Sequence record: NC_041917.1
DNA: 64,000 bases
Direction: 5' to 3' (one strand)
Within the stretch, counting starts at the first letter, position 1. Each line of letters opens with the position of its first letter. The translations under genes and the position numbers were made by a program. The notes below the pieces were generated by a model, which was not told where the DNA came from, did not search any database, and was given only the letters and a program-made list of their open reading frames with translations. This document shows, in pieces, positions 52,551 to 53,538 of this stretch.

Positions 52551-52677
52551 ATAAGGCAACGGAATCTTACAGCAAAAATACTAATTTTTGATGAAAACGA
52601 AACGACGAGGTTCGAATCCTCACCCACGAATTGCCTTATTATTAGTGGGAGCACGGTGCTGGATAAACAAAGATTCC
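52551..52677 (+). ncRNA. ACAGCAA element with permuted, degenerate tRNA (anticodon-like TT-GAT-GA)
   Basis: GGAATCT/AGATTCC flanks; T arm GAGG-TTCGAAT-CCTC precedes the GTGGG acceptor strand. Confidence 0.6.
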
Positions 52678-52698
52678 AGAATTTAAGTTAGAAAATTA

Positions 52699-52727
52699 TG
52701 AAACAAATCAAAAATTTGTGGTATAAT
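52699..52727 (+). promoter_or_regulatory. TGAAAC-class promoter
   Basis: TGAAAC-17-TATAAT. Confidence 0.75.
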
Positions 52728-52738
52728 ATAAGAAGTAA

Positions 52739-52847
52739 AGCGGGATGGTGATTGATGAAAGCTATTATTTGATTCTAGAAAATCATAATAAGTGAGTAAG
52801 AGAACAGGGTTCTTAATATCACGAGGGTTCGATCCCCTGTCGCTGCA
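52739..52847 (+). ncRNA. degenerate tRNA-like RNA
   Basis: T arm AGGG-TTCGATC-CCCT and AGCGG/TCGCT stem; centre replaced by other hairpins. Confidence 0.35.
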
Positions 52848-52849
52848 CA

Positions 52850-52978
52850 AAGCAACAAACGAAATCTCACAGCAAACAAAACAATTTTTTTCCTTGCATA
52901 GAAAAACGGTGGGGTTCGATTCCCCAACATCCAAGTTGCTTTTAGGATGTGTCTGGAAGGCCGTATGACAAAGATTTC
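52850..52978 (+). ncRNA. ACAGCAA element with permuted tRNA (Ala TGC-like)
   Basis: GAAATCT/AGATTTC flanks; CT-TGC-AT loop, T arm TGGGG/CCCCA, acceptor ACATCC before GGATGT. Confidence 0.65.
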
Positions 52979-53154
52979 AGTTCCTATCAACTAAAAAGGA
53001 TAGCATATAATGAGTTCTGAAGAAAATTTAGAATTATTAAATAAAATAATGAATGCCATTGCAAATGGTAAATTGAGTGAAACAATGACTGAACTTGGTT
53101 ACGAAGTAACTAAGAGTACTGATAAAAGTACAGAATGGTCATTAAAACAATAAT

Positions 53155-53228
53155 GTTCTGTTAGACAAATTGGTAAAGTCACCACCCTTTCAAGGTGGGG
53201 TTTACGGGTTCGACCCCCGTACAGAACG
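53155..53228 (+). tRNA. trnE: tRNA-Glu(TTC)
   Basis: CCACC-CTTTCAA-GGTGG. Confidence 0.9.
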
Positions 53229-53232
53229 CTAA

Positions 53233-53347
53233 AGGATTCGCACAGCAACAATAAAATCTTAAAATTCAATTGGTGAAAACAACCTTGCAGTTCGATTCTG
53301 CTTCCACAATGTGTGGATCTGGTGATGGATAGAAAAAACCGAATCCT
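53233..53347 (+). ncRNA. ACAGCAA element with permuted, degenerate tRNA (TT-GGT-GA loop)
   Basis: AGGATTCG/CGAATCCT flanks; T arm GCAG-TTCGATT-CTGC then TCCAC/GTGGA hairpin. Confidence 0.6.
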
Positions 53348-53385
53348 GATTTTAATTAAGAAGTACTAAAGAATTTGATACACAC

Positions 53386-53538
53386 GGATTTATACAGCAA
53401 ACATAATCCTAAAATAAAACATACGATAATGTTACTAACTCGGAATTCGTTCCCTTCGTTAGTACTTGGCAACTTGGGTACTTAAATAAGTTGTATCACC
53501 TCACGTGTATCGGATTAGAGGTGATTATAAATAAATCC
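53386..53538 (+). ncRNA. ACAGCAA element, divergent cargo
   Basis: GGATTTAT/ATAAATCC flanks; ACAGCAA at 53394; several internal hairpins. Confidence 0.55.

Follow-up and report, generated by a model that had tools for sequence, protein, structure and literature searches.

Candidate tRNA-mimicking small RNAs on a conserved clasp module in the tRNA region of Serratia phage BF

Serratia phage BF (NC_041917.1) is a jumbo phage of 357 kb belonging to Eneladusvirus, and its tRNA region was analysed here in a stretch of 64,000 nucleotides (nt; hereafter the window), which matches the record at 100% identity and whose position 1 is record position 248001. ARAGORN finds 20 tRNAs in the window and Rfam 21. 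The interval 52551-53538, for which the record lists only a 47-codon open reading frame (ORF) and a tRNA-Glu, holds four elements on the + strand, E1 (52561-52677), E2 (52861-52978), E3 (53233-53347) and E4 (53386-53538). They had been noted from the sequence as clasped elements with degenerate permuted tRNA cargo and, in two copies, a second helix crossing the clasp, and all of the features described were found in their places. According to our analysis, E1-E4 are best explained, with a probability of about 0.45, as conserved small RNAs that mimic tRNAs in a Y-RNA-like manner and are built on a recognition module of a terminal helix (P1) and the motif ACAGCAA, E1 and E2 being locked by a pseudoknot. 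They would represent four paralogous non-coding RNA genes that are transcribed together with the phage tRNA operons. The original prediction missed that the clasp with ACAGCAA is the conserved unit of a larger family, which is also inserted in real tRNA genes. In the searched literature, no paper was found that deals with permuted tRNAs, introns in tRNAs or Y RNAs of these phages, or that describes the clasp/ACAGCAA family, which points to an apparently undescribed phage RNA family. It is invisible in databases because annotation pipelines call the loci 'tRNA-Pseudo', 'tRNA-OTHER' or nothing.

Architecture and conservation of the four elements

All copies of the module share one layout, consisting of a 5' arm, ACAGCAA, a variable cargo, an A-rich strand and a 3' arm complementary to the first; in most copies (A)G and a U-rich tract come next. 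The two arms form P1, a terminal helix of 7-9 bp (consensus RGAAUCY / RGAUUCY), and ACAGCAA is invariant, single-stranded and located directly after the P1 5' arm, opposite the A-rich 3' strand. The pattern of 5' clasp plus ACAGCAA, GRAWTYNNNCAGCAA, has eight matches in the window, all on the + strand, against an expectation of 0.10, and eight or more were reached in none of 100 shuffles. Relaxed scans recovered 12 clasp-type copies (+ strand, starting at 29155, 52561, 52861, 53233, 53386, 54084, 56178, 56410, 57198, 57808, 58420 and 59239) and one hairpin-type copy. The P1 arms covary between copies, as in GGAAUCUU/AAGAUUCC, AGGAUUCG/CGAAUCCU, GGAUUUAU/AUAAAUCC, UGGAAUUCA/UGAAUUCCA and others. 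Across seven related loci, 67-80 distinct modules display a conserved GAAUC core, CAGCAA, an A-rich segment (J21) and two size classes. The logo of 79 distinct copies from these loci reads 5'-WWUUU-RGAAUCUA-ACAGCAA-NCAUAA...AAAAAAA-URGAUUCY-AGUUUU-3', and the same copies fall into size classes of 41-65 nt and 101-158 nt. The family has this P1/ACAGCAA/A-rich module as its constant part, which is found in three circular permutations. A pairing of ACAGCAA in cis was also considered, as RNAalifold pairs CAGCA with UGCUG in E1; it is regarded as E1-specific or fortuitous because the other copies have no equivalent partner.

Minimum free energy folds place P1 at the base of a multibranch loop in each of the four elements. 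In E1, the P1 arms (52561-52568 / 52670-52677; ACAGCAA at 52569-52575) enclose a P2 hairpin (52585-52597), a T arm with a TTCGA loop (52607-52621) whose stem shows compensatory changes, an acceptor-like helix of 5 bp (52623-52627 / 52645-52649), a mini D hairpin with a GG loop (52650-52660) and the A-rich J21 (52661-52668). E2 (P1 at 52861-52867 / 52972-52978; ACAGCAA at 52869-52875) likewise holds a P2 hairpin, here U/A-rich (52887-52906), a T arm with a TTCGA loop (52910-52926), an acceptor-like helix (52927-52932 / 52945-52950) and a G-rich D-like segment. The cargo of E3 (P1 at 53233-53240 / 53340-53347; ACAGCAA at 53242-53248) is made up of P2, a T arm with a TTCGA loop (53287-53301) and a short closed acceptor-like hairpin (53304-53316), and its J21 is GGAUAGAAAAAAC (53327-53339). 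The tRNA-derived nature of the cargo of E1-E3 and its circularly permuted order, namely T arm, acceptor 3' strand, linker and acceptor 5' strand, are confirmed as proposed, and these parts covary among orthologues. E4 (P1 at 53386-53393 / 53531-53538; ACAGCAA at 53394-53400) is indeed more divergent, yet its P1 and its three hairpins (53431-53465 with an inner GGAA-UUCG-UUCC, 53469-53494 and 53495-53525) carry many compensatory changes.

Positional orthologues of E1-E4 are present in jumbo phages of Yersinia (fHe-Yen9-04), Cronobacter (GAP32), Erwinia (Kaldavass), Xanthomonas (XbC2) and Pectobacterium (CBB), in two metagenome contigs and in one viral contig of 371 kb, and a metagenome scan contributed four E1 orthologues and one new cargo type. 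Mean column identity among the orthologues is 91% for E1, 85% for E2, 82% for E3 and 71% for E4. One pair of the E2 T stem occurs as GC, UA or CG and one of the E2 acceptor helix as GC, AU or UA; in E3, P1 shows double changes at two pairs and the T stem is GCAG/CUGC in BF vs UCGG/CCGA in the relatives. Nine pairs of E4 have compensatory changes, which support P1, all hairpins and the terminator that follows. The D-arm side of E1, which could have proved free to vary, is almost invariant (columns 101-126). Because compensatory changes support their helices, E1-E4 appear to be under selection for RNA structure. The decay series suggested earlier is rejected, since the orthologues are 71-91% identical across several phage genera and carry such changes; judged from the alignments, E1-E4 are distinct conserved paralogues and not successive stages of erosion.

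The same observations speak to a broader explanation, in which E1-E4 are non-functional relics of rearranged or tandem intron-bearing tRNA genes, or else repeats at the DNA level (miniature mobile elements, or sites of recombination or homing with GANTC inverted repeats). In its favour, the mini D arm and the 5-bp acceptor show degeneracy of the tRNA parts, and the permuted order is the expected outcome if insert-bearing tRNAs were duplicated in tandem; tandem-tRNA matches were seen. Relatives have HNH endonuclease genes dispersed across the region, and GANTC stands in both P1 arms. A truly degenerate tRNA-like sequence also lies between E1 and E2 (52740..52848, + strand), with acceptor and T-arm remnants, a GGGTTC duplication and no match to the Rfam tRNA model; it occurs only in BF and Yen9-04 and, from its sequence, does look like decay, as the sole piece of the region to do so. 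That positional orthologues span five or more phage genera and show compensatory changes in P1, P0 (described below), T, acceptor and E4 hairpins largely refutes this explanation. It is also at odds with the strict strand bias (12/12 clasp-type copies on the transcribed strand) and with the placement of promoter and terminator, and neither a transposase nor target-site duplications were seen. Exact module patterns gave only six chance-like matches in 185,579 bacterial genomes, all within coding DNA. A scan of viral contigs found the specific patterns confined to this phage clade, relatives such as RaK2 and 121Q being free of the module, and a loose gapped pattern returned about 119 loci, mostly by chance. 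We therefore consider an origin as relics or DNA repeats highly improbable.

The second helix, P0, pairs a 5' leader with the linker between the acceptor strands in E1 and E2. In E1, the leader AUAAGGCAA (52551..52559) is the 5' strand and the linker UUGCCUUAU in the acceptor loop (52631-52639) the 3' strand; the resulting helix, ATAAGGCAA x TTGCCTTAT, comprises 9 Watson-Crick pairs (-11.1 kcal/mol), a length reached in 111 of 200,000 shuffles. In E2, the leader AAAGCAAC (52849..52856) pairs with GTTGCTTT, the linker GUUGCUUU (52935-52942), through 8 Watson-Crick pairs (-10.0 kcal/mol; reached in 361 of 200,000 shuffles). The complementarity is conserved in relatives. Over nine E1 orthologues, eight pairs are invariant and the ninth is AU in four, GC in three, GU in one and a mismatch in one. 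For E2, AAGCAAC/GUUGCUU in BF and Yen9-04 is replaced by UAGCAAC/GUUGCUA in seven others, a compensatory change from A-U to U-A. The same helix is thus built from unrelated sequences in the two paralogues. P0 and P1 share no nucleotides and interleave, and therefore make a pseudoknot when formed together, as had been proposed; since both can coexist, the conformational switch offered as an alternative is not needed. The linker UUGC could also pair with GCAA of ACAGCAA, over only 4-5 bp. The conserved pseudoknot of E1 and E2 is a compact RNA structure that is directly testable.

E1 follows right after a promoter, as originally noted. This sigma-70-type promoter, TTGAAA-18-TGgTATAAT with a TG extension (52514..52543, + strand, 11/12 matches), keeps its TGGTATAAT box and spacing in all nine orthologues. 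The distance from the TGGTATAAT box to the start of the element is about 7 nt for E1 in every phage and for E2 in five phages, and P0 would therefore sequester the very 5' end of the transcript; for E1 the predicted start at about 52550-52551 makes the P0 leader the 5' end of the RNA. A second promoter, ATGAAA-18-TATAAT with a TG extension (52698..52727, + strand), precedes a unit of the pseudo-tRNA, E2, a small ORF, tRNA-Glu, E3, E4 and a terminator, and in GAP32, CBB, Kaldavass and XbC2 its equivalent directly abuts E2. The tRNA-Glu(UUC) is canonical (53155..53229, + strand), and E3 starts 4 nt past its discriminator. The intrinsic terminator (AAAGUAC...GUACUUUUUU; 53547..53572, + strand) is conserved in all eight orthologues. 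E1 would thus be expressed from its own strong promoter, and E2, E3 and E4 from the second promoter to the conserved terminator. One public run labelled as small RNA contains a single contig of 211 nt identical to 53373-53583, that is, E4 plus terminator, and nothing else from 48500-54499, which gives a weak hint of E4 as an abundant discrete RNA.

A permuted pre-tRNA was considered for E1-E3 and is excluded, as ARAGORN made no tRNA call in 714 (E1), 800 (E2) and 782 (E3) rotations and trims and none of the three rearranges into a tRNA. The Rfam tRNA model does not match E1-E4, and at gathering score Rfam finds only tRNAs over the whole window. The anticodon-like loops of the original prediction do exist and lie in the conserved P2 hairpin, but they cannot serve as the anticodon arm of a complete tRNA. 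In E2 the loop is not conserved either, being CCUUGCAUA in BF vs AUGCG in GAP32, CBB, Kaldavass and XbC2. Once flanks or insert are taken away and the order is restored, a cloverleaf with a 7-nt anticodon loop is obtained only from the insert-bearing tRNAs described next and, for the body only, from the copies at 56410 and 57198.

The module within tRNA genes and around other cargo

The hairpin-type copy lies within a tRNA-Lys(UUU) gene that is annotated as tRNA-Pseudo (48567-48691), and interrupts its anticodon stem with about 49 nt between nt 28 and nt 29. The inserted sequence is a hairpin version of the module, AAGAUUCA-AGUACU-UGAAUCUU-ACAGCAA (as DNA, AAGATTCA-AGTACT-TGAATCTT-ACAGCAA). 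Insert-bearing tRNAs (Lys-, Glu-, Ile- and Tyr-like), including orthologues of this gene, are present in all relatives, and removal of the inserts in silico leaves canonical Lys(UUU), Glu(UUC) and similar tRNAs. In seven Lys/Asn-type sequences, pairing of the split anticodon stem (27-28/42-43 and 29-31/39-41) is complete (100%), with double changes at four of its five pairs. Comparable inserts occur in four tRNAs (4681-4804, 4832-4954, 4971-5086 and 5996-6115) of Vibrio phage D479 (OZ195776.1), an unrelated T4-like jumbo phage, in which a hairpin is followed by ACCGCAA, UCAGCAA, ACAGCAA or ACCGCAC at the anticodon stem. A neighbouring D479 gene annotated as 'RNA ligase' was set aside, as it actually encodes the anti-CBASS protein Acb1.

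Gene content was taken from the whole-genome annotation of Erwinia phage pEa_SNUABM_12, which is of the same species as BF. It encodes a T4 Rnl1-type ligase with the tRNA-specific C-terminal domain, PNKP, an RlaP nucleotidyltransferase and a second RNA ligase (PF09414), as well as a CCA-adding enzyme, Thg1, TyrRS and a macro-domain protein. NAD (nicotinamide adenine dinucleotide) salvage genes and a Sir2-like protein were observed in the same genome.

The interrupted tRNAs bear on the possibility that P1/ACAGCAA is a splicing or processing signal, a functional analogue of the bulge-helix-bulge, at which an endonuclease or the RNA itself cuts both module/cargo junctions, after which the two ends of the cargo are sealed by a ligase of the phage. 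Mature tRNAs would thereby arise from the insert-bearing ones, and E1-E4 and similar copies would become circular or end-trimmed tRNA-like RNAs whose clasp is discarded. The perfect, covarying anticodon stems and canonical loops (CUUUUAA) of the interrupted tRNAs argue for removal of the insert, which would leave a nick within a duplex and hence a good ligase substrate; the phage has the Rnl1-type ligase, PNKP, RlaP, the PF09414 ligase, the CCA-adding enzyme and Thg1. Splicing would also agree with the three permutations of the module, as a hairpin insert in tRNAs, as a clasp on a permuted tRNA body and as a clasp on a hairpin, and with the insert-bearing tRNAs of the T4-like Vibrio phage. Against it, neither an endonuclease nor a ribozyme has been identified, and no known self-cleaving family matches. 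On inspection, with no dedicated search, no bulge-helix-bulge (two 3-nt bulges and a 4-bp helix) was seen at the junctions, which are flanked by a strand of 14-18 nt (ACAGCAA...) and an A-rich strand of 7-10 nt, the central 4-bp helix being absent. No excision and ligation product of E1-E3 is a tRNA, excising a 20-nt hairpin from the short copies seems pointless, and the module flanks are conserved like the cargo, which is unexpected for discarded sequence. For E1-E4 we regard this explanation as rather doubtful, though as the strongest of the alternatives.

A more far-reaching proposal, which we consider unlikely, is that P1/ACAGCAA is the recognition element of a so far unknown excision-and-ligation or RNA-marking system of large phages, a counterpart in bacterial viruses of the archaeal and eukaryotic machinery that handles intron-bearing, split and permuted tRNA genes. 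In that case tRNAs interrupted at 28/29 may be spliced, and E1-E4 and the copies at 56410 and 57198 may become circular or trimmed RNAs through a dedicated nuclease together with Rnl1, PNKP and the second ligase.

In two further long copies (56410-56538 and 57198-57317), the clasp encloses a permuted tRNA body that is almost perfect, having a complete D arm, a T arm and a closed acceptor of 6-7 bp, but no anticodon loop. The ORF between these YrlA-like copies (56591-57190) carries an ART-PolyVal ADP-ribosyltransferase domain. In the short copies of about 55-66 nt (54084-54140, 56178-56231, 57808-57873, 58420-58474 and 59239-59295), the clasp holds only a hairpin of 4-5 bp, and these copies lie close to the ends of tRNAs (3-7 nt away) or directly upstream of ORFs. 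Among their hairpin loops, some mimic tRNA anticodon loops (CTTTTAA, CTGTTAA), and a role as anticodon stem-loop decoys was considered. This idea was dropped because the Lys/Asn-like P2 loops are not conserved between orthologues; at one site they vary among CUUUUAA, CUUUUAC, CCUAACC and AUUGG.

The position of the short copies would fit modules that serve as intercistronic punctuation, that is, as sites for the endonucleolytic separation of tRNAs and mRNAs or for the stabilisation of ends, with the cargo of E1-E4 as a tolerated passenger. Copies are placed between genes, at a distance of 3-7 nt from the end of a tRNA or immediately in front of a ribosome-binding site (56178-56231 before tRNA-Ile, 58420-58474 before tRNA-Gln, 54084-54140 and 53233 just after tRNAs), the conserved part is independent of the cargo, and the 3' arm is succeeded by a U-rich stretch. 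For a passenger, however, the cargo of E1 and E2 is too conserved (91% and 85%, with covariation in T, acceptor and P0), E1 has its own promoter and nothing to separate, and the module inside tRNA anticodon stems is left unexplained. Punctuation is thus quite unlikely to account for E1-E4.

Additional observations concern the copy at 29155-29224, whose cargo is a tRNA 3' half only (an anticodon-arm-like hairpin, TGC-ATAGGGA-GC, and a T arm), followed downstream by a terminator-like hairpin and an ORF with an R2K ATP-grasp domain (29686-30474). Metagenome contig Ga0233415_10089522 has a module copy at 919-1009, TGGAATCT-TACAGCAA...AGATTCCA-GTA, with an unrelated cargo of 91 nt, which suggests that further cargo types exist. 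Among the tRNAs of the window, that at 41666-41741 has the anticodon CUA (tRNA-Pyl in the ARAGORN call, suppressor tRNA in relatives) and is of the amber-suppressor type and conserved in the clade, and tRNA-Gly(UCC) at 58704-58786 shows an unusual 13-nt insertion in the variable region in the Rfam alignment.

Proposed working of E1-E4 and its implications

The variable part of E1-E3 corresponds to the top half of a tRNA, with T arm, closed acceptor-like helix and a remnant D hairpin with GG, and that of E4 to a cloverleaf-like body of three hairpins. If E1-E4 are Y-RNA-like tRNA mimics, P0 would hide the 5' end and the site of action of RNase P and the CCA-adding enzyme, and would in this way keep the RNA whole. 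We posit that the closing-stem module works as in YrlA RNAs, as a sequence-specific dock for a protein, the most plausible candidate being a factor of RNA processing or repair, and that the tRNA-like body may engage or decoy the tRNA-binding machinery. An RNA repair or processing partner is plausible on grounds of gene content, since the phage species encodes RNA-repair genes. The factor that reads the module probably acts on tRNAs, by excision and resealing or by marking, because the module interrupts tRNAs at 28/29 with pairing kept. Resealing could draw on the Rnl1-type ligase, PNKP, RlaP, the second RNA ligase, the CCA-adding enzyme and Thg1.

Several observations weigh against this proposal. 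Beside tRNA genes, the module is also found around plain short hairpins, so that its primary role may be independent of the cargo, for example as a processing signal. No Ro60/TROVE gene was found in the whole-genome annotation of pEa_SNUABM_12 or in Pfam scans of neighbouring and large unannotated ORFs, a search whose sensitivity is limited as the scans covered part of the ORFs, and no partner protein that binds the module was identified. The motif GNCGAAN0-1G near the 5' end of YrlA, the presumed Ro60 contact (Chen et al. 2014, PMC4201824), is absent from the leaders and 5' arms of E1-E4, all copies of the module having RGAAUCYN-ACAGCAA. Non-Watson-Crick positions in P1 are G.U in seven cases vs A.C in four, a weak sign of pairing at the RNA rather than the DNA level. 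A search of public runs found no RNA-seq of infected cells, the matching runs being metagenomic, DNA-like or uninformative; wastewater 'RNA' runs contain relatives, probably as DNA. Read joints in public runs were discarded as chimeric matches to tRNAs of other organisms.

Phage tRNA clusters are usually read as helpers in codon usage or as spare parts against host anticodon nucleases. Here, one conserved module would underlie a dozen structured small RNAs that a jumbo-phage lineage maintains, precise tRNA mimics among them, and this module also sits within otherwise perfect tRNA-Lys and tRNA-Glu genes. Should the module be a dock for an RNA repair or processing factor, it would help to reveal how the tRNA pool is managed or protected in large phages, and orphan phage RNA ligases, for which we know of no natural substrates, might gain one. 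Should the inserts be spliced, they would to our knowledge be the first tRNA introns of a bacterial virus to be removed with the help of protein or in some other way than by group I splicing.

Comparison with known RNA systems

With the group I introns in anticodon loops of bacterial and phage tRNAs, the insert-bearing genes share an intervening sequence in a tRNA gene. The phage inserts are, in contrast, too small for a group I core (41-52 nt) and lie in the anticodon stem at 28/29, not in the loop, and Rfam gives no match to a group I family. Self-cleaving ribozymes (hammerhead, twister, pistol, hatchet, hairpin and HDV-like) are absent from the window at gathering score, and from 48000-58500, 52540-53580 and 57790-59310 at E <= 5-10.

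The intron-containing, split and permuted tRNA genes of Archaea and Cyanidioschyzon merolae (PMC4090602) resemble the phage loci in that one RNA motif serves three gene topologies, here insert, permuted and clasp. In the permuted genes the 3' half precedes the 5' half with a short linker between them, and introns are inserted at non-canonical positions of the anticodon stem. In contrast to these genes, the phage E1-E3 cannot yield a tRNA, and the tRNA bodies at 56410 and 57198 have no anticodon loop. We know of no splicing endonuclease of the archaeal or algal kind in a bacterial or bacteriophage context.

The Class I RNAs of Dictyostelium (RF01414) are about 42-65 nt long, carry the motif CCUUACAGCAA, are reportedly unique to dictyostelids, have a DUSE promoter element about 60 nt upstream and are bound by the RRM protein Rnp1A (Kjellin et al. 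2021, PMC7919456). They share with the phage module a short stem joining the ends, a motif ending in ACAGCAA directly 3' of the 5' strand (UCUUACAGCAA or UCUAACAGCAA in the phage), a variable A/U-rich middle, an A-rich stretch before the 3' strand, many copies per genome and a similar size, the short phage copies having 41-67 nt. The phage matches the consensus motif at 9-10 of 11 positions, of which the first 3-4 nt are paired in the phage (CUU or CUA in the stem). E2 (52861-53019) scores 24.3 bits against RF01414 with the wrong 3' partner, below the gathering threshold of 41.5, and the short copies at 57808, 58420 and 59239 give nothing at E <= 10. Since RF01414 fails to detect the short phage copies, we treat the likeness as resemblance and not as homology. 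Class I RNAs also differ in having no tRNA-like cargo, and the phage copies use sigma-70-type promoters or sit inside operons, with DUSE and the eukaryotic context absent. A bolder variant of the excision-and-ligation proposal, likewise unlikely in our view, would have the module share ancestry with the Class I RNAs of these bacterivorous amoebae, which bear ACAGCAA.

The closest parallel to the preferred reading is YrlA (RF02553). The phage differs from it in that no Ro60/Rsr gene was found, in the annotation and ORFs covered, to which it could be linked (for YrlA, within about 4 kb on the same strand), that the module is also found inside true tRNAs and around plain hairpins, and that E1 and E2 have a pseudoknot between 5' leader and acceptor loop, which is not described for YrlA. 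RNase P is known to cut YrlA of M. smegmatis (PMC4201824). E1-E4 have no match to RF02553 at E <= 10. The best member of the phage family, 57198-57317, aligns locally to the tRNA-like core of the model (positions 24-84) with 40.3 bits and E = 7.6e-8, against a gathering threshold of 69 bits. In architecture the likeness is broader. The 5' and 3' ends pair into a closing stem, a conserved single-stranded or bulged motif stands on its 5' side, and several paralogues occur per genome, the YrlA family being found in some phages as well. The body of YrlA is a permuted tRNA mimic of an optional V arm, a T arm, a closed acceptor-like stem-loop and a D arm, without an anticodon loop, and a permuted tRNA-like domain inside an end-paired stem is likewise present in E1-E3, in which P1 encloses the T arm, the closed acceptor helix and the mini D arm.

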